Sequence record: MZ622713.1
Length of the DNA stretch: 64,000 nucleotides
Strand: one strand, 5' to 3'
Positions 1-33,727 of the stretch are shown one piece after another. The notes beneath the pieces are model-generated. The model was not told where the DNA came from, did not search any database, and saw only the letters and a list, made by a program, of their open reading frames with translations. Made by a program: the position numbers and the translations under genes. How positions within the stretch are numbered: the stretch's first letter is position 1; each line of letters starts with the position of its first letter.

Positions 1-16
1 CGTACAACACACTTCT

Positions 17-3000: not shown

Positions 3001-4096
3001 GTTTGAAGTAGTACCTGTGAGTATCACTGACATCAATGCGACCACTGGTGTGTTTACGGCTGAAGTTACTGAGATGAGTCCAATTACTCGTGAATTGATC
3101 ATCTTCAACGAAGTTGACACTGAACACCATACAGTGGAGTGGCGTAACCCAGACATCAACGGTGCTTACATCGAGTGGGAAACTTCAACATTACCTACGG
3201 TGATGGTTGCTGGTGAATCTTACACGGTACGAGGTAACATTTACCAAGCCGACGGTTCATTGTACACACCAATGAGTCCTGAGACACTTTCTGTAGCAAC
3301 AGATGAAGGTGCTCAACCGGACGCTAATATTTATCCGAACGGCATGATCGCTATGGAAGTCAGCAGCGCGGATAAGAGTACTTGGAACTATACGTTATAC
3401 CGTAATATGGGATCGATCATCGATGACTCTATTGAGATCGAATGGGTAGAACAAGCATCTGTTGTTGTAGCGCCTTACTCATACAGTGAAGTCCCTCAGG
3501 GTGAATCTGGTGAAGTTTGGTTTGTCTACAAGAAAGACGGTGATACTCCTATCCAGTACCGTGATGTATTAGTAGGTGTTGGAACTCCGAGCTTTGACAA
3601 CCCTCCTAAGAAACTGACTACGGATGAATTCGGTATGGTTCACGTAACACTACCGTACAATGCGGAAGTTAGCGGGACGTCAGTTATTGGTTTATTGGGT
3701 GAAACGATCACACCGGCGGACCATACCGTCACTTGGGTGGACGACTCAGTTAAGGTTGGCACAACCTTCCGTAACTTGATCGTTCCTGATAAAGTGGCTT
3801 TGAGTGATGCGGTTGAAGTCGTAGGTGACACACTTGACAAATCTGGTGCAACCACCGATTACAGTCAAGTTGGTATTTACGATAAGACCACTCATACTTA
3901 CCATGAAAATGCGGTTAATGCAAACGGTAGCTTTAGTGTTCAACTTGGTCCTTTGGACGAAGGTGTCCATCATGTAGTAGTGTATACTGGCGCAGAGATT
4001 TCCGAGCACACAGTGACTTGGGATCCAACGTTCGTTAGTTTCACTTCGGTGGGGATTGATCCTAGCTCCAACCGTGTGGCATTAATCACGAAATAG
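17..4096 (+). CDS. Virion structural protein: non-repetitive N-terminal region followed by ~1000 aa of Ig-like (Big/carboxypeptidase-regulatory-like) repeats; probably 5'-truncated by the window edge
   Basis: 1359-aa ORF. The frame is open back to position 2 and there is no RBS before 17. After about aa 350 it has recurring G-x-VYDQ-x-G and TTD-x-x-G beta-sandwich motifs. Confidence 0.7.
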   Translation: MLRDHQVGKRYITKVELVAPWFLNTSDPETLNVPVNTMLQNLAFRAVVHYSDGSKSDELSIDGQKIQLLGLNEHKPSTPSQRGTLTLVYNLDPDEYIYEAQAGNPNQYRASYWMLAVPFDGAYSPKLYSYPTWVNGQYILKHFLTDLNRSFIIDATDHVRINELSPAFRPTTYGVEQTLELNCRLSDVVPTFKPMIMRQSTTFVLKAPGTEDGSKFDVRYSYDKGSYSDPTFKAINQADGRQEIVFGGEYETMEEWLDQTYHAVEPGYNPQREKGPIPPTHFEILASSGKTYEYEISRYAEKMYLDVQEPQGRTIFVRWIHETIQGDRLLLATTGISIDVTEGPDTETPVPTTIEFDSSVPSSVGELQVIEFSGRVYDQKGALVTDGLTKMLVKGGVNHNSLPRRVAIGLDGSFRFFTWSERVSGSTETFEFDFEVAGEEPEYFLTKEIRITTNQEQQTGEFFPYTPTKVSVSKAGRAYGQLLDAEGNSLRDTEFFSYVDTDLDSIRRETTDEQGKFLLTRIRKEGQDRTTFHLIVMGNRHQHVIRWEETTPYGDRVVLDVEDMTFVGEEQLSVKGRVYDQYGDLVVGVPVEVGYGPLWAPYAETDSVENGKFELTGSPKTPGAVYQVVVWTENDFKFGTVEWTEAPKIAFDIVMDPDNAPEAPAGTSVRIAGQLVDEDGNNFTSESRTPVYMKEIKDAEETIIYAGYDGKFEAEVGPYGDWEETTFVFRLENNNTGSHMIRWMGEPPRLAELRFDDGLPLSGEMGVPVTLTGTTFDQHGDAYLPGVPFEFDVSWAGKSDKAQSDGNGTWSYRAVGDKVGDTTYSFSSNNRVIGSYTINYTGDVTLNALPNDDKIFRVPYGMNRTIGWYVLDEQGKGKAGVELNVRQVSTIYSPERDLGTVTTDEFGIATFVAPYIEEEKDGTYVASLGLKEAQVVVKWSDEAGISVTLEALNVPPLTFGTTMQFTGKVLDETGAPLIVDRPYTGLWLSAYDRNTFEVVPVSITDINATTGVFTAEVTEMSPITRELIIFNEVDTEHHTVEWRNPDINGAYIEWETSTLPTVMVAGESYTVRGNIYQADGSLYTPMSPETLSVATDEGAQPDANIYPNGMIAMEVSSADKSTWNYTLYRNMGSIIDDSIEIEWVEQASVVVAPYSYSEVPQGESGEVWFVYKKDGDTPIQYRDVLVGVGTPSFDNPPKKLTTDEFGMVHVTLPYNAEVSGTSVIGLLGETITPADHTVTWVDDSVKVGTTFRNLIVPDKVALSDAVEVVGDTLDKSGATTDYSQVGIYDKTTHTYHENAVNANGSFSVQLGPLDEGVHHVVVYTGAEISEHTVTWDPTFVSFTSVGIDPSSNRVALITK

Positions 4097-4106
4097 GAAG
4101 TAATAA

Positions 4107-7100
4107 ATGGCAGGTATTATCAAGGGGAATCTCCTAGACGCTAATGGCGACGTGGTGATCCCGGGTAAACCGGTCACACTAAAGGCCGTCCGATCGGACG
4201 GCCTACCTGATGTGACTATCACGACCAACGCCAATGGTGATTGGTCATTTGAAGTTAATGCTGAAGTCGACTCAACGGTCGACTTCACTTTTATTTACAA
4301 CGGGGTTGATGTTGGCGCTCATGCGGTGCGCTTCTATGAAACCGCTGAAGTAGTTGGTCTACCTTATTCTAACTCTCGAGTTTTATTTGGCAAAACAGCT
4401 ACCATGGCATTTGCTGTAAAAGACCCGGAAGGAAAGGGTATTCCTTACGCAGATGTTACTATTCACCGTGGAACTGAAGGTTCTGAACCTGTCGCTACTT
4501 TAAAGACAGACCAGTTCGGAATCGTGACTTACACTGCACCTCCACACTCGGTTTATGAACGAGTGGACTTTTACGCCAAGGCTAACGACGCGACTGGTCA
4601 CTGGGGTGTTCAGTATGAGGACGGAGAAGAAGAGTTCGTAACGAAGTTAGTGGATTTCGATTACACACAACAAGTCGACGTTAACCGTCGTTTGGCTGTG
4701 TTCGGCGGAGGTCTGGAATCTTGGGGTATGATGGTCTGGATGCCACCTAAGGTGTTGTTCAATAAAGACACGTTGTCCGAAGTTCCCTTCAATGACGAAC
4801 CTGTTAATACTAACCACGTTTACATCTCGACCGACCCATTGCCTGCTGGACACCATAACTTGGTGTTTGCGATGGAAAGTGAATACCGTGAGTTTGTTGT
4901 TGAGTCCGGTAACTTCCCTGATGAAGTCATCACTGGCACACGTTCATTGTACCCTACGGTAGAAAACTTCCCTAACTTGATCTGGTGTTTGATGGAGGTC
5001 AATCTCCAAGTAGATGGCGCTGATCATCGTCCTCACGGTCTGATGAGTGTTACTGTAGAGGAAGACGGTACTTCAACAGAAGTGTTGGTTCGCCCTAATG
5101 GTGTGTTTGATTACATCGTCAAAGGTGATATTGGAGACGTTAAAAACTTCGTTTACAAGAACCCTGAAGGTGAAGAGATTGGCACACAGACTGCTACAGT
5201 CTTCAGTGCTCGCGTACGCGCTTGTGAGTACTCTGTTGATACACTTCCTACCTTGGGTAACGGTAAAGTTGCTTTTGCTGTAACAGACCCTGCTGGCAAG
5301 CCTGTGGTTAACGCCTTTACTTTGGTTAATGTGGGACATCGTGGTCGTGAACTCGTGGCCGTTTCGGATGAATACGGTATCGTAGAACTAACAGTAGAAC
5401 GTGAACCGGGTGAAAACGACACCGTCGCTCTCATCAACGTGGGTGGGTCGAATTTCGTTCGCTACGTGGTTCAATTCACTGGCGTATCAGTGGCATCTGA
5501 ATTCCGTGATTTAGATATTCCAGTACAAGGTGATACGGTTCGACCTATTACGGTAACTGGTAAAGTCTATGACCAAGGTGGGGTGGGCATTAAACCTCCG
5601 CGTTTAGGTATCTTTGATAAACAGTCTTTGACTTATCAACCTTTTGATGCGACACAGATTGGTAACGATGGTTCGTTTACTTTCGAGTACGGTCCATTGG
5701 CTAAAGGTGTTCACGATTTGGTGATTGGTTCTTCTGGTATCATTTCTGAGAAACGAACTCACTGGTCCATCGGTTTCCCTGATGGTCTTCGAGCTGAACG
5801 CATGAACTACTCGACATTACCTGACGCTTACGTTGGTGATGAAGCAGTAGTGGCTTTCCGAGCAAGTATCGTAGAGAACGCGTTATTGGTTCCAGTAGTT
5901 GGGGTTCCGGTTGTAGTCTACATCAGTTCGACCACTTTACCTACGGTTGAGTTGGCATCCAAAGAAACTGATGCTAACGGTATCGCAGAGTTCGTTATCC
6001 CACCTGAATTAGAGGGTGTGGAACTAAACGGCACTTATTCTGTTCGTGGTGTGATTGGTCCTAAGGATGTCACTACATCTATCAGTTGGGTGGATTCACG
6101 GGAAGTTACTAGTGGATTTGGTAACCTACAGTACACGGCAGAAATAAACAGTGGTGACGAGGTGGTCTTCAACTACCGCCCTCTAAACCAAGACGGTGTG
6201 GAAATGCCGGACTACGGTATAGGTTTAACTACCCGTGACCATTTCCAGATTGGCTCTTACGTCCCAGAACGCATCTTAAATGCCGATGGTTCTCGTACAG
6301 CAGTTTTCCCTCCAATGGAAGACGGTACTTACGATGTGGTATTGCACTCTGGTAACGCTCGTAACTATCTTTCTTTAACTTGGGGTGCGTTTGCAGTTCC
6401 TGTTCCAGCTGGCGTCTTGCTAGACTTTAACTCACCTACCGCTGCGGCTGTAGGGTCTAAAGCGGTTATCTCTGGTAAGGTAGTTGACGCTGACGGCTTA
6501 GTCATTAAGCCTGTAGGGGATATGGAATTAGAGTTACGTGATGAGCTAGGTACTAAGACTCAAATCAAGATCAATCCTGATGGCACTTGGTCTTTTGAAG
6601 CGACGTCCGACAGTGCTAAGTTGAAAACTTACACTCTAAGAAGTGACAACACTACGTTGTACACCCATCAGGTTAACTTCATCGCTACACCTACTTTGGA
6701 GTTCACAGGCTACACTGGTGACTTGGTTGACAAAGCCCATAAAGCTAGACTTGCCGTAATGGTGAAAGATAGTGAGTCAAACGGTGTTGAAGGTATTCTG
6801 GTTGATTTCGATGACACTTATCATGATGGTGTGCAATACGGAAGTATCTTAACCGATGAATTTGGTATCGCTGAAGTTGACATCAGTTTTGACTTGACTA
6901 CTGTGGTTGCTCCTACCACCCATCAAAACGAAGTAACTGCTTCTATCCGTCATACTGAAATCTCAGATAACAAAACTGTTCGTTGGGCTTCTGATTCTCA
7001 GAACTCAGTTATCGACATCGTTGACCTTGTGGTGAGTGACAATAACTACGAAGGTAACAAAGTTAACATTTCTGGTAAGTTAGTTGGTGCGATCAACCAA

Positions 7101-10100
7101 ACCAATAACTCGATCATGTGGTTAACCGTATTCAACAAAACTACGTTGACATACGAAATGTTCAATGGCTCCATTAACTTGGACGGAACATTCAATATCG
7201 AAGTGGGTCCTTACCCATTAGGTATGAACCAAGCGGTCATTGCTTCGAACAGTGTGGTTAAAGACATCGGTGTGGTGGTTACTGAAGCACCAGTGGTGTT
7301 GAAAGAAATTCGAGCACTTCCTTATTCAAGCACTAAGGTGAATAAGACCAGAAGCGCTACAGTGGCGTTTGCAGCGATTAACTCGCTAGATAAGCCAATG
7401 GCTGGTGAAACCATCGAACTGCGCTTAGGAAGCGATACAGGCTTCTTAATCGAGTCTAAAGTGACAGACGATCTGGGTATTGTGGAATTCAGTATTCTGG
7501 AGGATGCGGGTAACCCTAGTTCTGGTGCAATCGGCTACTTTGCAGTAAGTGGTGGTTTGAATACATCGACTTCTGTTGACTGGTCTCCTACAGGTCCAGT
7601 GGTTGAGTTGTTTGAAGGGTTTGAATCTACATCGAAAGTAAGTGGTGGTCAGAAAGGTTTGATTAAACTGGCGGCACGTTACCATGAGTCATTCACAAGT
7701 GGTATCCCGGCAACAGACCCGAACGGCAAAGTCACTCCTTGGGAAACTATGTCTTATATGGCTAACCCAAGCATTGGTGTATTTGACAAGCGTACTTTGA
7801 AACCATTGGCGTTTGAAGTTGTTAACCCGGGCATTAATGTGGCGGGTGAAGAGTTTGTGTTGATTACGGTTGATGCGCAACCAGATGGTGTTTACGATTT
7901 GGTAGTGTACGACGATAACGTCGCTGAACAAGTTACTATGACTTGGAATGCGAACTACACATTGCTCAAACCAAACAACTTCCAAACATTAGGTAACGTC
8001 TCTACAGAGTTTGTTGCCAACACCACTACTCAGTGGTTAGATGGCACGGCAACGGGTTCGGATAATGCTCCTATCGAACTAACCGGATACTTGACAGCAA
8101 TCATTGCCGGTAATGAAGAACACCCAGTTTGGATTACACCGACTGGTCGCTTTGTTACTAAGTTGGTTGAATCACGTCCGGCGGGTACATGGGCAGCAGA
8201 CTTTAAGGTAGATGGTGAAGTTGTATCTACTGTAGATATCAAGTTCCACGATCAAATGGTCGTGACGCTATTGCCTTACACAACACCAAACCCTGCTAAA
8301 GGTAAAGATGCGGTTATCGCAGCTGTTCTTAAAGACGGCTTAGGTGAACCTATCGCTGACGCTTGTGTGACGTTCACTCCGGGCGCTCGCAGTGGTTGGG
8401 GTAAACAGGTTAACCTTAAGTCTAACTTTAATGGTGTGGTGGAAACCACTTGGACGTATGATGACGCTTATCCAGAGTTCACTCTACAAACTGGGGTGAA
8501 TGGTGGTAAAGCCGGCGAAGCTAAACTAATGCGTTGGGTGGAAACACCTGAACTCACTGGTGATAGTTTTGAGACTCTCGTCGTACCTGAGAAAAACGTG
8601 GGTGATGCTAAGGCAACAATCACTGGTAAGATCTTAGACCAAGATGGTAACCCTTACTCTAATGGTGAATTGGTGATGTTTAACAAAACCACCATGGAGT
8701 CATTGAGTCTGACTGATGCTATTCAGGTAGATGGTACTTTCACCACAGAAACAGGCCCTTATCCATTCAACACTTACGAGTTGATCTTCGCTACTCGTGG
8801 TAATGTTGATCGTCGTTACTCGACTTGGGGTGGTAGTGGTATTCTTGCTAGCATCACAATCGACCCTGATAGCCCAACACGTGGTTTGTTAGGCGACAAC
8901 ATCACAATCTTTGGTACGTCTACGGACACCATTGGAACACCTTTCATTCCAGATGAAGGTTTCTATGAGTTGGATGTGGTTAACGATAAGAATGAAGAAA
9001 TTCTTCCTGTTGTTATCGACGGAACTGGCGTGTGGAGATTCAACGCTACGCATGATGTGGAAGAAACAATCACCTACACCTTTAAGGATGGTGAAACAGT
9101 TCTAGCATCACATTCTGTTGAGTTCTTTGTTGGAGCAGGTACATTACGCGACTTCAAGGTTAACAACACCGTAGCAGCTATTGACGAGACCTTTACTTTA
9201 ACAGGTGAAGTTTACAACACGGATAACCAGTTGTACCGTCCAGTGGCGGAAGAAGCATTCGTGTTACGTCTTGACGAAACCACTTCATTTATCGGCTCCA
9301 TCAATCCTGATGGTACGTTCGATGTGGATGTAACTCACGACACGGTAGAAACACTCACTTACACGTTCAACTATCTGGAAACGGATTACAATACAGTGGA
9401 CGTTCGTTGGTGTCAAACTATCACGTTATCGTTCAATGGTGATTCTCAGCCTAAAGCGGTAATTGGTAACGATGCTTACGTGTCAGTGAAAGTGGTTGAT
9501 GAGAACGGCATTGCACCAGAAGGACGTATCGTAGAGTTCTACGAAGGTGACGTTTCTGGTACACCGTTGCACAGTGAAGTAGTCGGCACCAGCTACGTAG
9601 GTTACTGGCCGGCAGCAGCAACTGTGGAAGGTGATGTAACGATCATTGCTAAACTAGGTGAACGTGAAATCCCAATGACTCTGACTTGGGTGGGTAACTC
9701 TCCTCAGATTGCAGCACGCTTTGGACGTGAAACGACAACGGCTGGCTTTGTAGTCGACCGTCTACCAGCTTCTGGTAAGTCTGCGACACTCCGTGGTAAG
9801 ATCGTTGATCAATTGGGTGCAGCTCTGGCAGGTCCTCAATACTTGAAACTGTTCGAACGCACAACGTTTACGTTGACTGATGTTTCTGATCAAGTTCAAG
9901 CAGACGGTACATTCGACATTGAAATCCCTGCTCAAGCAGACGGTGTTTACGAATACAGTCTGACGACAGAAGGTGATTCTGGTCACACTGGCACTGTTAA
10001 ATGGGATCCAGCTAACGAAGACCTTAAAACAGTGGTATTAAACGGCAGCGTACCTACTAGCGTTAACGTTGGTAGCACGATCATGTTGGAAGGTACCATT

Positions 10101-13100
10101 CAAGATAGTGACGGTGCAACTATTGCCCCAGCTGACAGCCTAACGGCTAATGTAACTACTAGCGAGGGTAGCAACTACGACATCACTATCACTCCAACGG
10201 GAACATGGCAATTAGGTTACACGTTCAGCGACCCGGGTGTGGTGTTATTTGACTTCCACACTAGCAAAGGTAAGTACTTGGGTTCAGTGGCTATTTCGGT
10301 GGCTATGGAACCACCAACATTCACGTCGATTAGATTCGATGAAGGGTTGGAGACCGAAGGTACTGTAGGTACACCAGTTAACCTACGAATGACCACACTA
10401 GACCAATACGGTGACCCAATTGGTAACGTGTCTGTAAGACCGTATGTCAATGGAGAACCGGGTTATGCGTTCCGCTCACCACCTGATGGTGCATGGGGTA
10501 TGGACGTTAACTCTGATGTTGCTGGTGAGGTACTGTACCAGTACGGTTGGGAACCTAACGTTCCATTAGTGGGTCACACGGTATTGTGGAAACTTCCAGT
10601 ATCGTCTATTGAGAGTCTACGTTATTCTGATTCTAATGCGGTTCCGGGTCAAGATGCTTTCGCGGCATTTGCAGCTCTGAATGCAGCAGGTGAAGGGATT
10701 GAAGGTGTTCCTATTACACTGCACCTAGATAATGCTAGTGGAACCGAGCACGCAACGGTTACTACTGATTCGTTCGGTATTGCTGAGTTCACTATCCCTC
10801 AATCAGGAACAGATAGCTCTCGCTTGGTTTACGCCAAGTATGGGGATGTGGTTAAAGAACGCCGTCAATGGTGGGCTAGTTCCGCAACGTCTCCAGCGAC
10901 AGGCTTTGCTAATCTTACTATTACTTCACCGGTACCAAATGGTGAACGTGCTATGGTTAGTGTGCAGGCAGTCAGTAAAGATGGAGACCCTCGTCCACTG
11001 GCTTCTATTGGTGTGTTTGATCGCAACACCTTGGATCAAGTCACAGTTAATAAAGTGTCGACAGGTGAAAGTAAGTCATTCCTACTAGACTTTGCTGGCA
11101 CTGGAACGGGTAACTACATCTTGGTAACAGACGCTGGTCGAACAGACTTCACTGTAACTTGGGATGACTCTGTTAAGAAGAACCCTGATGGTTTGATCTT
11201 TGATGCAACTTCACCGGATGCTTTCGCAGTAAACGTGTGGACTCGCATCAGTGGTAACTTGACTGAAGGTGGGGTTCCTGTAACCGACCTGAACAGTTAC
11301 GTTAAACCAACAGTGACAGTAGGTGGTGTGGAAACATACCTTGATGTTAACCTTGATACCGGTGCGTTCTCTGCAATGGTTCGTGGTACGGCAGAAGGGG
11401 ATTCAACTTACACGTTCAAACTGAACGATAACGTAGTTGCTACTAAGACTTACAAAGTCGTGGACGCAGTAACGTTCGGTGATATGGATGTGTTAACCAC
11501 AACAGCTCCTAAGGTTTATCAGGCGGCTGATGTTGGTGTAGTAGTTAAAGATGGTGCAGGTAACAGCATCCCGGGTGTTTACGTTACTTGGAGTGTGACT
11601 GGTGAAGCAGAACCTCGTGGTACGTCTAAGTCTGACGAAGATGGCATCGCAACGTTTAGCATCCCTTACATCCTAGGTACGTCGACCATGGAAGTTGTCG
11701 CGACTGTTAACTCAGTGACTAGCGCAACAACCGTAACTTGGAAAGCGAGTAATGAACTATCTGACGTAGACTTTGAGACCTTAGTAGTCCCAACTGAGAT
11801 CTACGACTTAGAGAAAGCTACTATTACCGGTAAGGTAATCAACCAATCTAGCGAAGGCACAACAACAACGAAGTTCGACGTTTATCACCGTGACATGCTG
11901 ACTTACACAAGTCATGCGGCTGATGTTCAACCGGATGGTACGTTTAGCTTTGAAATTGGACCGTTCGATATCGGAGTGAATCACTTCTACTTCTGTATTA
12001 ACGGTAAACGTGAAGCGCGTGACATTACAGTAATGGAGCGCACAGACCCAAAGCTTAGTACGGTAGAACTGGACGAGAGCAATCCTACGGAGGGGAACTC
12101 AAGCGAAGTTCTTACCGTGAGTGGTACAGGCTATGATCAGTACGGTGAACTATACCCTAACGGGGAAGTTCAATGGTCAATCGGTGGAGATGCCCAACCT
12201 CCATTGATGACCGGTCCTGATGGTAAGTTCTCTACTCAGGTAACGAACAATGCAGATGGTCCTGTAGTTTACAGCTTCGGCGGTAACGACGGTATCCCTG
12301 CAAGAGAGCTGACGATCACATGGACAATAGTGAACCTGTATTCCTTTGGCTTTACAGGTCCGTCACACATTAAACGCACACAGGGTGATGCAGCTCGCTT
12401 AGAGGTGTATCTAACTGATGAGAACGGCGCTGGAGTCTCCAACGCTAGCGTCGTTCTGAAAGATAAGGCAACTGGTGCTACGTTAACCACCATGACGACG
12501 AACAGTCGAGGTACGGCGAACTACAACGTATCGTACAAGTCTGGTGAAAACGTTCGTACTATTGTTGCGACTTATGACACCATGACTGCGGAACATGAAG
12601 TTGTTTGGGTTCCGGCAACGACTAAATACGCAGCAGGGTTTAGCAGTCTGTACATGGATACTCGTATTGCTTCTGGTAAGAAAGCAACCATTCGTGGTAA
12701 GCTTGCTGACCAAGATGGTAATCCGATTACGACTGCAACGAAAGTGGGTGTGTTCAACACTGTTAACTTGGATGATATTGATATTACTGATCGCATCCAA
12801 CCAGACGGTACGTTTGAATACGAATACGGTCCGGTGGCCGATGGTACGTTCTCTACGTTTGTTTACACAGACGGTGGATATAAGAGCGGAGTATTGGTGT
12901 GGAGTACTAGCAACCAAGACATTAAACGTGTGGTCTTTGATGAGGACATTCCTCGCATGGCACCGGGTAATGGTCGAGTTATGTTGCACGGTACACTGGT
13001 GGATACTGAAGGTAACAAGGTTATTCCTAAGTACACTACGGCATGTACAGCTTACGCCGATGGTGGACAAACCTTCACTGGCTCTATCACCACATCAGGA

Positions 13101-14675
13101 ACTTGGTCTGTGGAAGTTTACTTCTCTGAGTTCCGCCCACACACTATCGACATCGTCAATTCGAACAATGCTTGGTTGGGACAATACTCACTTATTGTAA
13201 CACCAGACAACATCATCACCGAGTTACCTTACTCGTCTAATATCGCGACCGTAGGTCAAGCAGCGACTATGGCGGTACGTGTAACTGATCAAGGTGGCTT
13301 GCCAGTAGTTGGAACTGAAGTAACAGCTCATGTGGGTGACCCTTCAAATCCAGCGGCTGTTACTGGTACAACCGACGCTCTAGGTATGCTGTCATTACTA
13401 GTTCCATCTCCAGCGGAATCTGGTGTGACCACAGTATACTTCAAGAACGGCAGTTCTGTTCTGGATGCAGCGGTTGATTGGAAACCACTTGATGTGTTGG
13501 TTGGTCGTGTCTTCCAAGACGTGATTGTACCTGAGTATGTCGATTACAACCAGACTGCTCACGTTAGTGGTAAATTGATGGATCAAAACGGTGACGTTTT
13601 ACTAGGTCGTAACCCTCGGGTTTACCATGTAAATGACAACACTATTTTGAACACAACACTGACTAAGAACGATGAAACTGGCTTCGAGTTACAAATCGCG
13701 GCATTGCCGTCTGGAACTCACCAGTTGGTACTATTCGTAGGTAACGCTGAGACTTACGAAGAAATCACGTGGGAGGTACAAATCCCATCTATCGGTAAAG
13801 TGACAGGTGCAACGTATTCAACTAAGAAAGCTCCACTAGGTGTTGATGCAACTGCGTACTTCTACGTTACTGCTCCGAACGGTGCGGTACTGGCCGATGT
13901 GCCTGTTAAGGCTTACTGGGGTAATGCTTCGGGTGAAATGATTGGTAAAGTTATGACTGATAGTACTGGTCTGGCTACTTTCACAATCCCGGGTAAAGAT
14001 GGCGAAGTTGATCGTACTGGTTCTTACACAGTTTACGCAACGGTTGGTGGTGAGTCTTCCACGGTTACTATTGAGTGGGTAGACGGACAATTGATCGGTA
14101 GCACTATGACTCGTGTGGACAGCATGGACGTAGTAGTGAGCGGGGAGAAATTCTTAGCTCGTATGTCAGTGCTTGATCAGAACGGCGACCCAATGCCAAA
14201 TCCAAACATCGTTTACTACGAACCTCGTATCCAAGTTGCACGCTCCTTCACTATTGTAGACTACCCGTCCGATGACATCGTAGTTGAATGTAGTGTTGGT
14301 TTGTTGAGCAGTAAACAAATGGTACTTGGTACTGATAACGCCGCTACACCTATTCCAATCGATTGGAACAGTTCAGTGTCGTTAATCGCTCCGGTAACCG
14401 CTAAAGTCGAACCTGCACTCCCTGCATCTAACCCAATCGGTCAAGACTTGATTGTGAAAGGTAAAGTGCTGGATGCGGAAGGTCAAGAATTCCGACCAAC
14501 GACTATCTTGTCACTGAAAGCAGTTCGTACTGACACCAGTGCTGAGACTAACATGAAGGTAATGCCTGATGGTGAATGGGCGTTTGTTGTTAATGAAGCA
14601 ACCGCAGGGGATGTGACGTATAACCTAATGTACGGCTCTACTCAGCTAACCAGCTTCACGGTGACATTCGCTTAA
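4107..14675 (+). CDS. Giant Ig-like repeat protein (3522 aa), putative virion fibre/adhesin
   Basis: RBS (AGGAAG) upstream. Roughly 35 beta-rich ~95-100 aa units with recurrent motifs (LPYS..A..G..A, TD.FGIAEF, GK..DQ.G, DGTF..E.GP, I.PDGTW). No signal peptide or TM segment evident. Confidence 0.75.
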   Translation: MAGIIKGNLLDANGDVVIPGKPVTLKAVRSDGLPDVTITTNANGDWSFEVNAEVDSTVDFTFIYNGVDVGAHAVRFYETAEVVGLPYSNSRVLFGKTATMAFAVKDPEGKGIPYADVTIHRGTEGSEPVATLKTDQFGIVTYTAPPHSVYERVDFYAKANDATGHWGVQYEDGEEEFVTKLVDFDYTQQVDVNRRLAVFGGGLESWGMMVWMPPKVLFNKDTLSEVPFNDEPVNTNHVYISTDPLPAGHHNLVFAMESEYREFVVESGNFPDEVITGTRSLYPTVENFPNLIWCLMEVNLQVDGADHRPHGLMSVTVEEDGTSTEVLVRPNGVFDYIVKGDIGDVKNFVYKNPEGEEIGTQTATVFSARVRACEYSVDTLPTLGNGKVAFAVTDPAGKPVVNAFTLVNVGHRGRELVAVSDEYGIVELTVEREPGENDTVALINVGGSNFVRYVVQFTGVSVASEFRDLDIPVQGDTVRPITVTGKVYDQGGVGIKPPRLGIFDKQSLTYQPFDATQIGNDGSFTFEYGPLAKGVHDLVIGSSGIISEKRTHWSIGFPDGLRAERMNYSTLPDAYVGDEAVVAFRASIVENALLVPVVGVPVVVYISSTTLPTVELASKETDANGIAEFVIPPELEGVELNGTYSVRGVIGPKDVTTSISWVDSREVTSGFGNLQYTAEINSGDEVVFNYRPLNQDGVEMPDYGIGLTTRDHFQIGSYVPERILNADGSRTAVFPPMEDGTYDVVLHSGNARNYLSLTWGAFAVPVPAGVLLDFNSPTAAAVGSKAVISGKVVDADGLVIKPVGDMELELRDELGTKTQIKINPDGTWSFEATSDSAKLKTYTLRSDNTTLYTHQVNFIATPTLEFTGYTGDLVDKAHKARLAVMVKDSESNGVEGILVDFDDTYHDGVQYGSILTDEFGIAEVDISFDLTTVVAPTTHQNEVTASIRHTEISDNKTVRWASDSQNSVIDIVDLVVSDNNYEGNKVNISGKLVGAINQTNNSIMWLTVFNKTTLTYEMFNGSINLDGTFNIEVGPYPLGMNQAVIASNSVVKDIGVVVTEAPVVLKEIRALPYSSTKVNKTRSATVAFAAINSLDKPMAGETIELRLGSDTGFLIESKVTDDLGIVEFSILEDAGNPSSGAIGYFAVSGGLNTSTSVDWSPTGPVVELFEGFESTSKVSGGQKGLIKLAARYHESFTSGIPATDPNGKVTPWETMSYMANPSIGVFDKRTLKPLAFEVVNPGINVAGEEFVLITVDAQPDGVYDLVVYDDNVAEQVTMTWNANYTLLKPNNFQTLGNVSTEFVANTTTQWLDGTATGSDNAPIELTGYLTAIIAGNEEHPVWITPTGRFVTKLVESRPAGTWAADFKVDGEVVSTVDIKFHDQMVVTLLPYTTPNPAKGKDAVIAAVLKDGLGEPIADACVTFTPGARSGWGKQVNLKSNFNGVVETTWTYDDAYPEFTLQTGVNGGKAGEAKLMRWVETPELTGDSFETLVVPEKNVGDAKATITGKILDQDGNPYSNGELVMFNKTTMESLSLTDAIQVDGTFTTETGPYPFNTYELIFATRGNVDRRYSTWGGSGILASITIDPDSPTRGLLGDNITIFGTSTDTIGTPFIPDEGFYELDVVNDKNEEILPVVIDGTGVWRFNATHDVEETITYTFKDGETVLASHSVEFFVGAGTLRDFKVNNTVAAIDETFTLTGEVYNTDNQLYRPVAEEAFVLRLDETTSFIGSINPDGTFDVDVTHDTVETLTYTFNYLETDYNTVDVRWCQTITLSFNGDSQPKAVIGNDAYVSVKVVDENGIAPEGRIVEFYEGDVSGTPLHSEVVGTSYVGYWPAAATVEGDVTIIAKLGEREIPMTLTWVGNSPQIAARFGRETTTAGFVVDRLPASGKSATLRGKIVDQLGAALAGPQYLKLFERTTFTLTDVSDQVQADGTFDIEIPAQADGVYEYSLTTEGDSGHTGTVKWDPANEDLKTVVLNGSVPTSVNVGSTIMLEGTIQDSDGATIAPADSLTANVTTSEGSNYDITITPTGTWQLGYTFSDPGVVLFDFHTSKGKYLGSVAISVAMEPPTFTSIRFDEGLETEGTVGTPVNLRMTTLDQYGDPIGNVSVRPYVNGEPGYAFRSPPDGAWGMDVNSDVAGEVLYQYGWEPNVPLVGHTVLWKLPVSSIESLRYSDSNAVPGQDAFAAFAALNAAGEGIEGVPITLHLDNASGTEHATVTTDSFGIAEFTIPQSGTDSSRLVYAKYGDVVKERRQWWASSATSPATGFANLTITSPVPNGERAMVSVQAVSKDGDPRPLASIGVFDRNTLDQVTVNKVSTGESKSFLLDFAGTGTGNYILVTDAGRTDFTVTWDDSVKKNPDGLIFDATSPDAFAVNVWTRISGNLTEGGVPVTDLNSYVKPTVTVGGVETYLDVNLDTGAFSAMVRGTAEGDSTYTFKLNDNVVATKTYKVVDAVTFGDMDVLTTTAPKVYQAADVGVVVKDGAGNSIPGVYVTWSVTGEAEPRGTSKSDEDGIATFSIPYILGTSTMEVVATVNSVTSATTVTWKASNELSDVDFETLVVPTEIYDLEKATITGKVINQSSEGTTTTKFDVYHRDMLTYTSHAADVQPDGTFSFEIGPFDIGVNHFYFCINGKREARDITVMERTDPKLSTVELDESNPTEGNSSEVLTVSGTGYDQYGELYPNGEVQWSIGGDAQPPLMTGPDGKFSTQVTNNADGPVVYSFGGNDGIPARELTITWTIVNLYSFGFTGPSHIKRTQGDAARLEVYLTDENGAGVSNASVVLKDKATGATLTTMTTNSRGTANYNVSYKSGENVRTIVATYDTMTAEHEVVWVPATTKYAAGFSSLYMDTRIASGKKATIRGKLADQDGNPITTATKVGVFNTVNLDDIDITDRIQPDGTFEYEYGPVADGTFSTFVYTDGGYKSGVLVWSTSNQDIKRVVFDEDIPRMAPGNGRVMLHGTLVDTEGNKVIPKYTTACTAYADGGQTFTGSITTSGTWSVEVYFSEFRPHTIDIVNSNNAWLGQYSLIVTPDNIITELPYSSNIATVGQAATMAVRVTDQGGLPVVGTEVTAHVGDPSNPAAVTGTTDALGMLSLLVPSPAESGVTTVYFKNGSSVLDAAVDWKPLDVLVGRVFQDVIVPEYVDYNQTAHVSGKLMDQNGDVLLGRNPRVYHVNDNTILNTTLTKNDETGFELQIAALPSGTHQLVLFVGNAETYEEITWEVQIPSIGKVTGATYSTKKAPLGVDATAYFYVTAPNGAVLADVPVKAYWGNASGEMIGKVMTDSTGLATFTIPGKDGEVDRTGSYTVYATVGGESSTVTIEWVDGQLIGSTMTRVDSMDVVVSGEKFLARMSVLDQNGDPMPNPNIVYYEPRIQVARSFTIVDYPSDDIVVECSVGLLSSKQMVLGTDNAATPIPIDWNSSVSLIAPVTAKVEPALPASNPIGQDLIVKGKVLDAEGQEFRPTTILSLKAVRTDTSAETNMKVMPDGEWAFVVNEATAGDVTYNLMYGSTQLTSFTVTFA

Positions 14676-14702
14676 TACTTGAGTGTTAAATCTGTAAAGA
14701 CA

Positions 14703-14740
14703 ATAACTCGGGTAGGTTAGACCTACCCGAGTTATCTTTA
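14703..14740 (+). terminator. Intrinsic terminator
   Basis: Perfect 15-bp stem ATAACTCGGGTAGGT/ACCTACCCGAGTTAT with a 3-nt loop, followed by CTTTAT, just after the stop of the 3522-aa gene. Confidence 0.8.
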
Positions 14741-14840
14741 TGTTTACGTCGTGGATATATACCGCGATGGGAATTTTATTGAATCAAACAGGCGACTAGG
14801 TTTATGACTTAGTATGTGAAACAAACAAAGGAAGATACTA

Positions 14841-17800
14841 ATGGCGGGTGTTATTAGAGGAAACTTGTTAAACGGTGATGTTGCGGTAAATCCTGAGGGG
14901 CCCGTCAATCTCACTTTGAAGCGAGACGATGGTCTTCCAGATACCGAGGTCACAACAGACGCTCAAGGTAACTGGGAAGTGACGGTCGAATCTGCTGCTA
15001 AGAAGAAGGTGAAGTTTTCTTTCTTCGATAAAAGTAAAGCACTAGGTGAACACGAAGTAGAGTTCATCAAGCAGTTGGAAGTTATCCCTGCTGGCGGTAA
15101 GTACACCACGGACAATGTAAACTATTTCTTTGGTCGTTTAGTAGACGAGAACATGGTCGGGTTACCCAACATCACCATCAACTGTACTTACATGTTTGAT
15201 AGTGATGGCATCTGGCAGGAAGATGAAGCGACTACGGATGCTAACGGGTTCTTCTACTTCTACCGTAGCGGCATGCCAGCGGAAGCTACTTCCCTAACAG
15301 TTACTTTCACTTACGGTGAACTTACCGATACGTTGGTTTATCCTCTTTTAGATGGATTCGTGCCACGTTACTTCTCGGAAGTATTCACTCCGTTTGAAGT
15401 TAAGACCGGTGAACCAATGACCGCTTACGGTCGCATCTTTACTGATTATTCCAACCCACAACCGTTTACTGAAGGTGAGAAATTCCTAGGGCACTTCACA
15501 GACAACGTGTTGGAATATAAAGAGGATTCAGATAAACTATCGGACACTGGTAGCTTTGGTGTTTCATTGGATGGTTTGAAAGGCACTCTGTTTTGTAACA
15601 ACGGCATTCAACGAGTCAGTACTGTTGTGAACGATTCAGTGGTCATGCCTGCTTTAGTTCGTTTCTCACCACGTACCATGTTCCTAACTCCGGGGAGCGG
15701 TAGCTGGGAAGTGTCCTTCCGTACCTTTGGTCCGGATTACACCACTCCAACCACTATGTTGAGTGAGTTACGTTGGACTGACTTTGATAATTCTCGTTAC
15801 ACTCAAGATAGCAGTCATGAATCAGACTGGACTGGTTACAACTGGGTATCTCCACAACAGGGCTGTGTTAAACACACTTTGTTCTGTCGTGGTCGTGTAG
15901 TTGGTGAAGAATTCTATTTCCACCATGTTACTGGCAACACCCTAAACGTGGCAGCTGGTACTCGCAACTTCGTTGAAGTGGGTTCTGATTGTGTCATTCG
16001 CACACTCCTAGCTGATAACGAAGGTAAGGGTATCGCAGGAGAAACAGTTCAGTACTACATTGATGGCGTACTGAGTGGTTCAGGTGTTACTGACCAATAC
16101 GGTCTTACTGAAATCACTGTACCGGGTCTTGCTGAATCTGGTCGTAAACACGTAATGGCAGCATGGGGTGAATTAAAGATCACAGTCTATGCTGACTGGG
16201 TACCGGTAGAGAGAAAGATCGTTGCTAAGAGCATCACGTGTCCTTTCATCACTCCGATTCGTAAACGCGGTCATACGGTTAACTTCTTTAGCCCTATCAA
16301 CTCTGATGGTGAAGAATTTAACCTAACGCCGATCAATACCTACGAAGGTATGGCTATCCAGTATTTTGACGACCCTTACTACCGTCAATACGCTGATACC
16401 GATAACGACATGAACTGTATTCGTATCTCACGCGGTAACACTGCTGGTAAAACCCGCATGGCAATGAGCTGTGACGAGTTCCATACAGAAAAAGATGTAG
16501 TCATTGATAAAGTGGCTGGCATTAACCCTTTGATTTACGCACCGGGTACTTCTGCGGTTGGTCGTACGTTGACTACAGGCTGGCGATTACTGGATGCTGA
16601 TCTTAACCCAATGGTTGGTGAAGATATCCAAGTGTGGATCGACATCAAGTCTGGTGACCCAGCGCAAACACTTACTACTGACAAATACGGCATCGTTCAT
16701 ATCGACGTTCCTTATGAATCAGGTAAGAACATCCGTAAAGCCTTTGCTAAGCACGGTGCAGACGAACACGAGTTAGAACTTTATTGGACTGACCGTAACG
16801 TAGCTTGTGATATTGAACTGACCTTCCCAACGGAAGTGTTTATTGGAGAAAGCTTTACAGTAGACCCAACCACTAAGAACCAACACGGTGAGGTGGTCAC
16901 AGTAGCTAACCCGGCGTTGTACTGGATTGGTACTGGTTACCAGTTTGGTGTTTATCAGAAGGGTGCTCACGAAGATGTCGTTTACGGCGATAACGTGAGT
17001 TCGGCTGTTGATGTTAGCGTTTCAGGTGAAGAAGGTGAACACACTTTCGTATTCTACACGGATGGTGGCTTCAAAGAGTTTACGGTCAATGCGACAAAAC
17101 GTCCTGTTCGTGACGCGAGTGTCATTTGGTACGGTACTGGTAAAGTTCCACCGGGTGAACAAGGGTTATCTGCTTTCTCTATCACTGATAGTGAAGGCAA
17201 CGGTGTTCCGGGTGTTGAGGTATCGTTAACTAACAAGCAACTTGGTACGTTAGTAGGTACAGTGACCACAGATGAATTTGGTATTGCTGAGTTCTATCAT
17301 ACAGTACCAACCACTGAAGGTAACTATGACTTCGAGATCTCTGTTGTAGGCGCTCCTCCAACGTATGTTTATCACACCATCTGGGTGACGGACCGAGACT
17401 ACATTCCAAATGAATTCCGTGACTTCATGATCACTGACGGTGTAGCACTCAACCAAGGTCAGATTGCTAGCTTCACTATTTGGAACAACGGTGGTCTGCA
17501 AGTAACTGAAAGCATGCCTTACGTTAGCTGTTTCATTAAAGAAACGTTAACCGAAATTAGTGGTTACACTAACTGGGTGGATGGTAAAGGTACGTCAGTA
17601 TTTAACCACAACATCCCAGCCGGCACTTACACTGCCGTGTTCTTTGCTAATAATGCTCGTGTTACTAAGTCGATCACATGGGATAACCGTGCTAACCCTA
17701 ACCCAACCAGCTTTGAGTATATTGGTGGAAAACCTAAAGTGCTTGATAGCTCAAGCGACACGATCACACGACTACGTGCATTGGATGCGGAAGGTAACAC

Positions 17801-20318
17801 CTTCATTCCTGCGGGTCTGAAAGAGTTCTTTGTAAGCAAGCCTAGTCAAGAACGTGTTGGTAATGGTTTCATTGGTCCTGAAGGTATTTTGGAAATCCGA
17901 TGGAGACCGTCAATGCCAGCAGGTGAAGCGACGTTTAACTTCGAAATGGGTGGTGAAATATACTACACATTAGACGTTAATCTAATCACGGGTGCAGTAG
18001 TGAAAGTTCTTCCTTATACTCTCGCTTATCCGGTGGTTGGGAACGACGTACTCACAGGTGCTTATTTGGTTGACGCTAATGACGTTCCTGTAGAAGGTGC
18101 GCCTGTTAAACTGACAAACACTCAGAATGGTAAATTGATCGCTGAAGGACTGACTAACGAGTTTGGTGTTATCGAAGGTATCTTGGCTTACGATGCAACT
18201 CAATCTGTAGCACGTGTTAGTGCGACGTTTGGTCAATCTAGTCACTTCATGATGCCTCAGTGGGTGGATGCTGATCGTCCTCGTCCTGTTGAGATTCGTT
18301 TGACGAATCCACCAACAACAGTAGAAGCCGGTGCTTCAGTGAAACTGCTTGGTCAGGTTTACGATCAAGACGGAACTTCATTCGGTTTTACTCAGTTCAA
18401 GACCTTTGAGTTGAGAAAATACGAAATGATCAACCGTAGTACTAACTCTTCTGGTGGTGTTGATCTAAGCTTCAGTGGTTCGCTGGATGGTGCAAACATC
18501 TACGTGATTTACACTGACAGTGGTTTAGTGAAACATACGGTGAATGCTGCTTCGGCTCCTGCTTCGGCTGAGTTAGTGAATGGTCCAGTTCCTACCGTTC
18601 TGTTCGGACAACCAGCAACAGTTGAACTTCAAGTTAAAGATGCGGGTGGTAACAACTTTATCCCTAGCGCTGAAACCAAAGTCAACCTACTTGCTAAGAG
18701 TGGTCGTTACCAGCATTACAATGCAGTTATTGGTGAAGATGGTAAAGTTACTGTTCCTCTTTATACCGACGGGTACACAACAGAAACTTACGTCCTAGCT
18801 AATGAAGCGATGGATACTTCGTTACTGGAATTCCCGGTATCTCACGAAGTATTGAGCTTGACTCGCATGAGTAGTGCGTCCGTTGAACCTCGAGCTAGCC
18901 AAGATGGTACAGTCCAGTGTTCTGTGTTTGGTCTGAACAACTACATGCTTCAAGGTATCTTGGTTGAAGTTTATGAAACGACTTCTGGTGAAACTTTCAT
19001 TACGAAAGGCGTGACTGGTGAATACGGTTGGGTGGAACTAACTATCCCGACGAAGAACCAAGCCGGTACACGTAACTTCAAAATGAAGGTAGCTGGTAAA
19101 GAACATGACTTCAGTATCGATTGGGTAGAAGACACCACTTTACGTCCTGCTTCGGTTACTTGGACTAAGAAACCAGATGCGGGTACTGTGGATGATGGTG
19201 CTATATACCAAGGTACGTTGTTGGATCAATACGGTGACCCACTACCTAACGTCAACATTGTTTTGAACAACAAGACGTGGGAACGTGGTGAGAACTCTTG
19301 GAACGATGTTGGTTCTGATGGTACATTTGAATTCGAAGTATGGCCTGACGCTGGTGTACATCACTTCTCTGCGTTGTTTGGTGGCTTGCTATTGAACTTA
19401 GATGTTAACATCACAGCACCTAACTACATCGAGATTTCTCCACTATCAGTCTTCCTAGTTCCTTGGGAAGAAGAAGCTAACCTTGCGGTTATTTACACTG
19501 GTACAGACGGAAGTTACGTACCGGGTGTGGAGATAACTTACCGTAAGGGTTCTGAAACTGGTGAGATCATCGGTACAGCTACAACGGATGCATCTGGTAC
19601 TGCTGAGCTTAAACTGACATGGGCAGAAGCACAACAACACAAAGGCAACATTCACATCTCTGGTCCTAACGGAGCGAGTCGTGTTCGTATGCTGGAAGTG
19701 GCGGTTAACTCTTCGGCCATGATGTGGCGTGCTCAACCTGTTTGGATTCCTACTCACATTCACCCTACTCAAACCGTAGTGTTATCGGGTATGGCTGTGG
19801 ATAAAGATAATAATCCTAAGACAGGCTTGCGTGCAGCGGTCCACTTGGTTGACCCTGTAACGGGTAAATCTGATAAAGTGTACTCGTCTAGCAATGACAA
19901 CGAGTTCTTCGAAATGGTGATCGAACCAAAACGTTACGAACTCAATAAGAAGTACATCCTAGTCCACGGTAGTGAACGTACTGAGGCTGTCATCTCTTGG
20001 GGTGGCGTCAACAAACCAGTGTACGGTGACGTTAAAGTAGCTTCGGTTCCTTCGAGCTATGTCGCTGGTGAAGCCTTTACTATTACGGGTACTGCTAAAG
20101 GTCCGGGTGGTGTTCCTTGGTCTCCAGAGTTCGGTACGCTGAACTTGAAAGCTGAGGTCATCAAAGGCTACGTCCCACAAAGCTCGGCAACTGCTACGGT
20201 AGATGACCAAGGTAACTGGGAAATGACTATCACAATTCCTACTACAGGTGAACACATGATCTGGTTCCTAACGGAAGACAACGGATACTGCGACCGTAGA
20301 GATGCGTGGGTGGTCTAA
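14841..20318 (+). CDS. Large Ig-like repeat protein (1825 aa), paralog of 4107-14675
   Basis: RBS AAGGAAG. The N-terminus MAGVIRGNLL...DGLPD...GNW matches MAGIIKGNLL...DGLPD...GDW of the previous gene, and it carries the same repeat motifs. Confidence 0.75.
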   Translation: MAGVIRGNLLNGDVAVNPEGPVNLTLKRDDGLPDTEVTTDAQGNWEVTVESAAKKKVKFSFFDKSKALGEHEVEFIKQLEVIPAGGKYTTDNVNYFFGRLVDENMVGLPNITINCTYMFDSDGIWQEDEATTDANGFFYFYRSGMPAEATSLTVTFTYGELTDTLVYPLLDGFVPRYFSEVFTPFEVKTGEPMTAYGRIFTDYSNPQPFTEGEKFLGHFTDNVLEYKEDSDKLSDTGSFGVSLDGLKGTLFCNNGIQRVSTVVNDSVVMPALVRFSPRTMFLTPGSGSWEVSFRTFGPDYTTPTTMLSELRWTDFDNSRYTQDSSHESDWTGYNWVSPQQGCVKHTLFCRGRVVGEEFYFHHVTGNTLNVAAGTRNFVEVGSDCVIRTLLADNEGKGIAGETVQYYIDGVLSGSGVTDQYGLTEITVPGLAESGRKHVMAAWGELKITVYADWVPVERKIVAKSITCPFITPIRKRGHTVNFFSPINSDGEEFNLTPINTYEGMAIQYFDDPYYRQYADTDNDMNCIRISRGNTAGKTRMAMSCDEFHTEKDVVIDKVAGINPLIYAPGTSAVGRTLTTGWRLLDADLNPMVGEDIQVWIDIKSGDPAQTLTTDKYGIVHIDVPYESGKNIRKAFAKHGADEHELELYWTDRNVACDIELTFPTEVFIGESFTVDPTTKNQHGEVVTVANPALYWIGTGYQFGVYQKGAHEDVVYGDNVSSAVDVSVSGEEGEHTFVFYTDGGFKEFTVNATKRPVRDASVIWYGTGKVPPGEQGLSAFSITDSEGNGVPGVEVSLTNKQLGTLVGTVTTDEFGIAEFYHTVPTTEGNYDFEISVVGAPPTYVYHTIWVTDRDYIPNEFRDFMITDGVALNQGQIASFTIWNNGGLQVTESMPYVSCFIKETLTEISGYTNWVDGKGTSVFNHNIPAGTYTAVFFANNARVTKSITWDNRANPNPTSFEYIGGKPKVLDSSSDTITRLRALDAEGNTFIPAGLKEFFVSKPSQERVGNGFIGPEGILEIRWRPSMPAGEATFNFEMGGEIYYTLDVNLITGAVVKVLPYTLAYPVVGNDVLTGAYLVDANDVPVEGAPVKLTNTQNGKLIAEGLTNEFGVIEGILAYDATQSVARVSATFGQSSHFMMPQWVDADRPRPVEIRLTNPPTTVEAGASVKLLGQVYDQDGTSFGFTQFKTFELRKYEMINRSTNSSGGVDLSFSGSLDGANIYVIYTDSGLVKHTVNAASAPASAELVNGPVPTVLFGQPATVELQVKDAGGNNFIPSAETKVNLLAKSGRYQHYNAVIGEDGKVTVPLYTDGYTTETYVLANEAMDTSLLEFPVSHEVLSLTRMSSASVEPRASQDGTVQCSVFGLNNYMLQGILVEVYETTSGETFITKGVTGEYGWVELTIPTKNQAGTRNFKMKVAGKEHDFSIDWVEDTTLRPASVTWTKKPDAGTVDDGAIYQGTLLDQYGDPLPNVNIVLNNKTWERGENSWNDVGSDGTFEFEVWPDAGVHHFSALFGGLLLNLDVNITAPNYIEISPLSVFLVPWEEEANLAVIYTGTDGSYVPGVEITYRKGSETGEIIGTATTDASGTAELKLTWAEAQQHKGNIHISGPNGASRVRMLEVAVNSSAMMWRAQPVWIPTHIHPTQTVVLSGMAVDKDNNPKTGLRAAVHLVDPVTGKSDKVYSSSNDNEFFEMVIEPKRYELNKKYILVHGSERTEAVISWGGVNKPVYGDVKVASVPSSYVAGEAFTITGTAKGPGGVPWSPEFGTLNLKAEVIKGYVPQSSATATVDDQGNWEMTITIPTTGEHMIWFLTEDNGYCDRRDAWVV

Positions 20319-20328
20319 CAACTAAACT

Positions 20329-20366
20329 ATAACCTAGGGTGGCTCAAGGCCACCCTAGGTTATTTA
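20329..20366 (+). terminator. Intrinsic terminator
   Basis: 15-bp stem ATAACCTAGGGTGGC/GCCACCCTAGGTTAT immediately after the stop codon. Confidence 0.75.
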
Positions 20367-20406
20367 GGCATCGTATAGACCCTAGCCGTTTAGCAAGGAG
20401 TTATCA

Positions 20407-23622: not shown

Positions 23623-23634
23623 TTAAAAAACATA

Positions 23635-23670
23635 AATAACTCCTACCTCCCTAGGGAGGTAGGAGTTATT
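23635..23670. terminator. Bidirectional terminator; perfect 36-bp palindrome
   Basis: AATAACTCCTACCTCCCTAGGGAGGTAGGAGTTATT is its own reverse complement and lies between the convergent terL and tmk genes. Confidence 0.8.
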
Positions 23671-23810
23671 ATTATGCCACGCGCCTCATCGGAGCTTCAA
23701 GTCACGCCAATAACTTGAAGATAAGGCAACATCTTTCACCAGAGAGGAGTTATCATGTACGCTTTTACCCAAACTCGTTCGTACATAAAATAATACACGC
23801 TGGTTAAAAA

Positions 23811-24434: not shown

Positions 24435-24497
24435 TATTAAAATTCCTTGGATGTGTAAAAAGTATTAGGAGTCTATAGACTCCTAATACCAGTTTTA

Positions 24498-30700: not shown

Positions 30701-30710
30701 GAGCAATCCC

Positions 30711-31700: not shown

Positions 31701-31712
31701 GGACATCCAAAT

Positions 31713-32702: not shown

Positions 32703-32707
32703 TAATC

Positions 32708-33697: not shown

Positions 33698-33727
33698 TCA
33701 AATATAACGTCAGTTGGACCAAGGAAC

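Follow-up and report, generated by a model that had tools for sequence, protein, structure and literature searches.

One of the closest described counterparts of the genes discussed here is found in the tail baseplate of the jumbo phage phiKZ. According to the phiKZ atlas, gp27 scaffolds the outer peripheral baseplate and gp26 cross-links it, five copies of gp26 are found in each star lobe, and the gp26 C-terminus inserts into partner proteins; this star-lobe location of the gp26 family is known for phiKZ alone. The periphery built by gp26 and gp27 is also the docking place of the phiKZ fibre paralogues gp131, gp133, gp134 and gp135, which, like the branched receptor-binding sets of other phages, combine a conserved N-terminal attachment segment with divergent distal parts. 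Another kind of join has been proposed for the DUF7941 proteins (Goslar gp22/gp23 and phiKZ gp126/gp127), which are thought to connect head to tail, a flexible segment of one protomer extending the beta-sheet in the N-terminal domain of the next. The phiKZ and Goslar structures leave most of the peripheral baseplate and fibre region unmodelled. Here we describe three consecutive genes, referred to as ORF1, ORF2 and ORF3 (for open reading frame), from a stretch of 64,000 nucleotides (nt), in the following called the window, that was found to be 100% identical (Megablast) to part of the genome of Vibrio phage phiKT1019 (MZ622713, 238,840 bp; window position 1 is record position 174841).

The closest relatives of phiKT1019 belong to the genera Aphroditevirus and Tidunavirus of the subfamily Gorgonvirinae and are phiKZ-like, nucleus-forming jumbo phages themselves. 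Based on sequence comparison and predicted models, we propose that ORF2 and ORF3 are exchangeable distal fibres on a stem formed by ORF1, joined to it via a split immunoglobulin-like (Ig-like) domain, a reading to which we give roughly an even chance. It builds on a preliminary description of the window that had been made from the sequence alone, whose observations we confirm and whose interpretation we can support in part.

Results

ORF2 and ORF3 begin with the same incomplete Ig-like unit

The extreme N-termini of ORF2 and ORF3 are 42% identical over 101 amino acids (aa; BLASTP, E 3e-15), so that the matching starts reported in the preliminary description are real, and the common module comprises ~76 aa. 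A HMMER search with residues 1-100 of ORF3 against 1.84 billion proteins recovered ORF2 at E 4.5e-14 and found the module at residues 1-13 of 11 cluster representatives, ORF3 and ORF2 included. Every representative with an N-terminal module whose source was checked comes from this phage group, and the remaining matches were generic internal Ig repeats. Searches for more distant relatives of the module likewise returned this phage group only.

An iterated hidden Markov model (HMM), seeded with ORF2 residues 1-80, detected 20 internal copies of the unit in ORF1 to ORF3, each with 24-28 residues ahead of its first core strand, while the N-terminal copies in ORF2 and ORF3 have just Met-Ala-Gly at this place. 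On a 98-position profile of the full unit, the N-modules of seven phages all begin at positions 28-51 and none covers positions 1-27.

The nature of the missing piece became apparent from AlphaFold2 models, which were computed as single chains with each piece alone. The last complete unit of ORF1 together with the tail that follows it was modelled with a mean predicted local distance difference test score (pLDDT) of 87.9 and eight strand elements, namely A (residues 11-16), A' (20-22), B (27-34) and five more, the strands A and A' of the pre-segment reaching a pLDDT of 95-96. The model of ORF3 residues 1-95 (mean pLDDT 88.4) contains six strands, of which strand B (residues 2-8) comes first; it corresponds to the six later strands of the complete unit, with nothing ahead of strand B. 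Since the pre-segment is predicted as strands and the module model starts at B, the module lacks strands A and A' and not just a linker. Thus, judged from profile and model, the N-module is an Ig-like unit without strands A and A'. Both proteins had earlier been said to lack the first strand of the unit. The truncation itself is confirmed by profile and models, but the missing piece is not a single strand; it consists of the two short strands A and A'.

One other interpretation of the module was considered, namely that it is a complete domain of the CarboxypepD_reg type and the pre-segment a linker (in Pfam, ORF2 residues 5-52 fall on family positions 2-47). It was rejected, because the pre-segment forms two strands at the high pLDDT given above and only six strands remain after it. 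Foldseek with the N-module model gave no match at E <= 0.001; the top hits, strand-swapped FN3/Ig domains at E ~0.03, were not used.

ORF1 combines a baseplate protein homologue with an orphan C-terminal tail

Residues 39-562 of ORF1 match PHIKZ026 (gp26; PDB 9xqd chain a, chain residues 22-545 of 552) with E 1.5e-47, and ORF1 also matches phrog_3430 and phrog_27497 ('virion structural protein'). The 860-aa protein encoded upstream matches phiKZ gp27 (PDB 9xqd chain, E 2.4e-43) and a second solved virion protein (E 2.2e-68). As phiKZ gp26 has 552 residues, ORF1 possesses ~1000 extra C-terminal residues, all of them Ig-like repeats. Given the homology of ORF1 to a phiKZ outer-baseplate protein, 'fibre' is a reasonable word, and a baseplate-anchored stem (ORF1) with fibre-like distal proteins appears to be a fair description of the three gene products.

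Beyond the closing Trp of its last complete unit, ORF1 continues into a short tail (Table 1) that aligns with the start of the next unit in the internal repeats. In the last strand-like piece of this tail, the A' motif of the unit before it recurs. Two subclasses can be distinguished among the Ig-like units, and a G-x-W motif marks the one that includes the N-modules. An HMM of the pre-segment of this subclass, built from internal units of phiKT1019 only, scored the ORF1 tails of VP4B, pTD1, phiKT1019 and phiKT1028 at 13.2, 10.6, 5.1 and 3.6 bits, respectively, with 1.7 bits for the best control in a set of 21,142 residues. The corresponding HMM of the other unit subclass did not single out the ORF1 tails. 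The fraction of invariant columns in ORF1 is 0.35-0.54 over columns 1101-1500, 0.72 over the last 88 and 0.92 over the last 12. AlphaFold2 models the tail as coil, without folding it back onto its own unit.

Tail and module also fit in length. If the closing Trp of the previous unit is counted as position 1, the invariant Gly of strand B stands at position 31 in 11 of the 20 internal units, and position 25 is the last of the tail in each of the five Aphrodite-like ORF1 homologues. Because the same Gly is residue 7 of the module, the N-modules start at position 25. The C-termini of ORF2 and ORF3, in contrast to that of ORF1, lie within a few residues of a complete unit. As both proteins thus end flush with such a unit, they are without a donor tail; the terminal residues cited in the preliminary description are present, and its statement that neither protein ends in a donor-like strand holds. 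Taken together, the sequence evidence supports that ORF1, unlike ORF2 and ORF3, possesses a conserved terminal tail whose type and length would suit it to provide A and A'.

A further observation concerns the ORF1 homologues of Tidunavirus (~2485 aa; L005 7369-14814, L007 7114-14574 and L008 7115-14566), which by eye appear to carry two or three tandem A/A'-like motifs at their end instead of a single one. Only the last of these scores clearly by HMM.

Conservation and distribution among relatives

Eight genomes of two genera were compared, comprising seven isolated phages and one metagenomic contig of 244 kb, referred to as L009 (region 10001-25490). The cassette recurs in every one of them: a single tail-bearing ORF1 is accompanied by at least one and at most five genes with the module, and by no fewer than two in the isolates. 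The Aphrodite-like isolates have two such genes each, pTD1 and VP4B have four, and phiKT1028 has five. In most distal proteins the C-terminus coincides with the end of a complete unit, but gene 04 of pTD1 and VP4B as well as ORF2 of L009 carry an additional donor-like tail. Modules of the 04-type and of the 05-type were both found in both genera, which is why we consider the duplication behind them to be old.

Conservation is uneven along the distal proteins. Compared with the orthologues in the phages 2 TSL-2019 and Aphrodite1, residues 1-76 of ORF3 are 82-89% identical while the whole protein reaches ~33%; for ORF2 the values are 87-93% and 54-64%, respectively. At the DNA level, 2 TSL-2019 matches only window positions 14683-15112 (Megablast). 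A conserved N-terminus followed by divergent distal sequence, as expected of phage receptor-binding proteins with a shared anchor, was thus found for both ORF2 and ORF3. A module that stays constant, while gene number and distal sequence vary, fits interchangeable distal parts.

The contig L009 adds a second junction. Its ORF1 and ORF2 carry the usual tail and module, and its ORF2 extends by a 24-residue tail after the last Trp. The next gene follows 16 nt on, has a ribosome-binding site and is not separated from ORF2 by a terminator. It starts at position 17 of the unit profile, in the A'-B region, and thus not with a canonical module, of which L009 has one gene. Hence, two separate gene boundaries interrupt the unit in the same region.

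The distal proteins are arrays of Ig-like units

Pfam families matched by ORF2 are Big_1 (E 4e-24), MG4, bMG3, CarboxypepD_reg and Filamin, and those matched by ORF3 are Big_1 (E 1e-22), CarboxypepD_reg, bMG3 and MG4; in both proteins the repeats run throughout. ORF2 and ORF3 therefore belong to the bacterial Ig-like/E-set repeat proteins (Big_1, MG and filamin-like), with beta-sandwich units of ~95 aa. Dividing protein length by ~97 aa per unit gives an estimate of ~36 Ig-like domains for ORF2 and ~19 for ORF3. The unit profile matched filamin repeats in the PDB (E 2e-4), and Foldseek with the unit model returned Ig-like, CARDB, S-layer and MG domains. The label 'invasin' that the record attaches to ORF2 reflects the Ig fold only.

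Terminator-like hairpins and candidate promoters

A strong terminator between ORF2 and ORF3 had been proposed earlier, and the hairpin at 14703-14735 indeed outranks every other terminator-like site in the 20 kb scanned (window 1-20000). Structurally it shows what is expected of an intrinsic terminator, a G+C-rich stem-loop followed by a T run. In the relatives, a strong hairpin lies 5' of nearly every module gene, except where the gene directly follows its neighbour, and the two distal genes of L009 have no terminator between them.

The TATG motifs reported upstream of 14841 were found as well: three of them (14739, 14803 and 14813) lie between the hairpin and the ORF3 start, while at least three TATG occur in just 0.6% of 105-nt windows. 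The one at 14813, a candidate start site of a late promoter, is kept in two relatives, 2 TSL-2019 and Aphrodite1. In phiKZ, the late promoter is TATG with the G as +1, although TATG alone is insufficient and further, undefined downstream determinants contribute (PMC4666361). TATG was not seen 5' of the equivalent Tidunavirus genes, and the conserved GTATGTGAAAC near 14812 does not recur across the window as a promoter motif would (4 matches compared with 6.6 expected). Independent transcription of ORF2 and ORF3 might set the ratio of long to short fibres, as suggested in the preliminary description, but this is a conjecture.

Two other features of this region deserve mention. Within window 1-20000, matches to sigma-70-like promoters are depleted (7 compared with 26.8 +/- 4.9 in shuffles), in keeping with a phage independent of the host RNA polymerase. 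The second strongest terminator-like site of the scanned 20 kb lies at 4262-4287, within coding sequence (Table 1), and is kept with loop changes in four Aphrodite-like phages. Its perfect stem of 10 bp compares with a longest perfect stem of 8 bp in 65 control windows, and hairpins of 6-9 bp occur at the equivalent place in several other module genes.

Locus organization and neighbouring genes

The tail tube and sheath genes are encoded on the minus strand. On the plus strand, genes for a 292-aa protein and the 860-aa protein are followed by ORF1, ORF2, ORF3 and a gene for a 1071-aa protein. All reading frames of the locus are intact, without internal stops. The start of ORF2 lies 10 nt past the ORF1 stop, which the ORF2 ribosome-binding site overlaps. 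A fusion of ORF1 and ORF2 by read-through or frameshift was ruled out: ORF2 is in a different frame, which is closed by a TAA directly before its ATG, and has its own ribosome-binding site. The coordinates of all features are given in Table 1.

Table 1. Features of the ORF1-ORF2-ORF3 locus of Vibrio phage phiKT1019, in window coordinates.
Feature	Position	Strand	Remarks
ORF1 (UPT54003, 1587 aa)	1..4096, begins 667 nt before window	+	annotated CDS 174173-178936 of MZ622713
Last complete Ig-like unit of ORF1 (residues 1468-1563), reference whole unit	3734..4021	+	
C-terminal tail of ORF1, 24 aa past closing Trp, orphan A + A' segment, putative donor	4022..4093	+	
ORF2 (UPT54004, 3522 aa), record label 'putative invasin', long distal Ig-repeat protein	4107..14675	+	
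N-module of ORF2 (residues 1-76)	4107..4334	+	
10-bp perfect hairpin with T-rich tail inside the coding sequence of the ORF2 N-module	4262..4287	+	
Intrinsic-terminator-like hairpin between ORF2 and ORF3, 15 pairs (7 G-C), loop 3, T-rich tail	14703..14735	+	
Three TATG motifs (14739, 14803, 14813), last one candidate late-promoter start site	14739..14816	+	
AGGAAG ribosome-binding site of ORF3	14829..14834	+	direct sequence reading
ORF3 (UPT54005, 1825 aa), shorter distal Ig-repeat protein	14841..20318	+	
N-module of ORF3 (residues 1-76), putative acceptor	14841..15068	+	
16-bp hairpin 3' of ORF3	20329..20363	+	RNA fold of 20319-20406

The 292-aa gene (L002 30696-31574), which is the first of the baseplate cluster, encodes a homologue of phiKZ gp28 (Pfam PhiKZ_VTX). 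In phiKZ, gp28 is located on the inner face of the capsid vertices, and its Goslar counterpart was not seen in the map. Hence, ORF1 to ORF3 might be read as head fibres. This was ruled out, since the matches of ORF1 and of the 860-aa protein are to gp26 and gp27, which are baseplate proteins.

Downstream of ORF3, the 1071-aa protein (window 20407-23622) is labelled helicase, DarB-like or terminase depending on the record, and its best match is to PHROGs of the terminase large subunit (E 4e-50). Unlike its 777-aa homologues in pTD1 and VP4B, which are 89% identical elsewhere, it has its Walker A motif interrupted by a 293-aa insert (window ~20950-21828). With a terminal His-Asn and a Thr directly after it, the insert resembles an intein; no Pfam family matched it. 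Further downstream, window 29651-35019 holds five genes of ~330-350 aa in tandem that are distant paralogues of each other (21-23% identity, E down to 2e-15).

Discussion

The three genes are best considered together. ORF2 and ORF3 would be paralogous distal fibre proteins of a phiKZ-like tail baseplate, with the 76-aa N-module as their attachment piece. With its gp26-like N-terminal part, ORF1 would be fixed in the outer baseplate and project ~ten Ig-like domains outward, and its tail would complete the beta-sandwich of the N-module in trans, by fold complementation. If the tail completes whichever N-module it meets, any given ORF1 stem would bear one distal fibre, the long one or the short one. 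If the module is held constant and the rest is free to vary, distal parts would be exchangeable and could be gained or lost between phages. The physical contact between tail and module, the competition of ORF2 and ORF3 for it and the location of both proteins in the virion are steps that we infer from these comparisons.

Several points weigh against this proposal. AlphaFold2 folds the N-module confidently without A and A', and the module may thus be stable alone; at the same time, the alignments behind both models consist only of paralogous units from the window (20 for the complete unit). The signal of the Aphrodite-like tail is modest, with 5.1 bits for the isolated tail and less than 1.5 bits when it is scored in a context of 110 residues. 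The ORF1 tail of pTD1 and VP4B continues into a strand-B-like piece that would overlap strand B of the 04-type module. Furthermore, no virion proteome or micrograph of these fibres was found in the literature for this phage group. The literature searched likewise yielded neither a description of these genes nor adsorption data.

The main rival explanation takes the N-module as a shared anchor that docks on another baseplate component, be it the gp27-like scaffold, the gp26-like body or some other peripheral protein, with the tail having a different partner or none. Its strength is precedent, since in phiKZ the docking of paralogous fibres on the baseplate by way of shared N-termini is established (gp131, gp133, gp134 and gp135). 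In addition, the conservation pattern of the module would fit any fixed docking site, and the module alone yields a confident AlphaFold2 model. However, docking elsewhere gives no account of modules that start exactly where the ORF1 tail stops, of a tail that matches the pre-segment of the module's own subclass, or of the second junction in L009 that is split at the same point of the unit. We therefore regard it as unlikely, albeit as an explanation to be taken seriously.

Alternatively, tail and truncated module could be leftovers of the fission of a giant gene and a subsequent duplication, without any role in joining, and the distal proteins would then be loosely associated or independent. 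The short distance of 10 nt between ORF1 and ORF2, two protein ends that look like one unit cut in the A'-B loop, and the readily changing gene number in the array all agree with such an origin. Yet tail and module are both more conserved than their surroundings and have been kept in eight genomes of two genera, and the 04-type and 05-type module lineages predate the split of these genera. A non-covalent joint requires a cut inside a domain, whereas a neutral cut should decay, and fission without function is in our view improbable. Least probable is that ORF2 and ORF3 are no virion parts at all, for example adhesin-like proteins made during infection, as the label 'putative invasin' hints. Such a role would agree with family matches that are limited to generic bacterial Ig-like domains (Big_1, MG and filamin-like), but the genes stand within the tail and baseplate cluster, adjoining those for sheath, tube and the gp27-like and gp26-like proteins. 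Moreover, ORF1 bears the same repeats fused to a baseplate protein, and phage receptor-binding proteins usually show just this combination of a modular N-terminus and distal parts that diverge.

Returning to the split-domain joint, one might speculate, with somewhat more doubt than for phiKT1019 itself, that the long baseplate fibres of the Gorgonvirinae are in general separate polypeptides joined by a naturally split Ig-like domain. Under such a plug-and-socket rule for the locus, A/A' would form the end of the upstream protein and strand B the beginning of the downstream one. If so, serial joints would be possible, as between ORF2 and ORF3 of L009, and so would several alternative distal fibres per stem. 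The Tidunavirus ORF1 homologues, with their tandem motifs and four or five module genes, could even give rise to branched fibres.

If true, the split-domain joint would account for the attachment of proteins of 1800-3500 residues to the baseplate, for the differing number of distal genes in close relatives and for the position of the module boundary. It would also offer a rule for reading related genomes, in which a protein with an orphan A/A' tail would be the stem and proteins that start at strand B its alternative distal parts.

Joints in which one Ig-like domain is completed by another polypeptide have a well-known parallel in chaperone-usher pili, where a subunit with a missing strand is completed by a strand of its neighbour. 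Pilins lack the C-terminal G strand, an N-terminal extension serves as the donor, and pili depend on a chaperone and an usher. In phiKT1019, A and A' would be missing and the donor would be C-terminal, thus with reversed polarity, and the analogy is one of principle only. As the polarity is reversed and no chaperone or usher family was matched among the locus proteins scanned, the proposed joint is not a member of the chaperone-usher system. Filamin Ig repeats are the nearest solved relatives of the unit by sequence profile, and some of them lend strand A to a neighbouring repeat. However, this lending takes place within one chain and serves regulation, not the assembly of separate polypeptides.

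Among phages, the DUF7941 proteins are similar in that they belong to the same virus family, the Chimalliviridae, sit at the same baseplate periphery and are proposed to join through an intermolecular beta-sheet. They differ in fold and polymerise with themselves head to tail, whereas here one donor would meet several acceptors that terminate the chain; in Pfam, no DUF7941 domain was matched in ORF1, ORF2 or ORF3 at E up to 0.01. The attachment segments of the phiKZ fibre paralogues are reported as a helical bundle in a hetero-hexamer, while in phiKT1019 the segment is a single Ig-like domain minus two strands, and its proposed dock is the C-terminal tail of the gp26 homologue. Thus, paralogous fibres with a shared N-terminal anchor are of a known kind, whereas a split Ig-like unit, with the C-terminal tail of a gp26 homologue as putative donor, is new to the literature searched.

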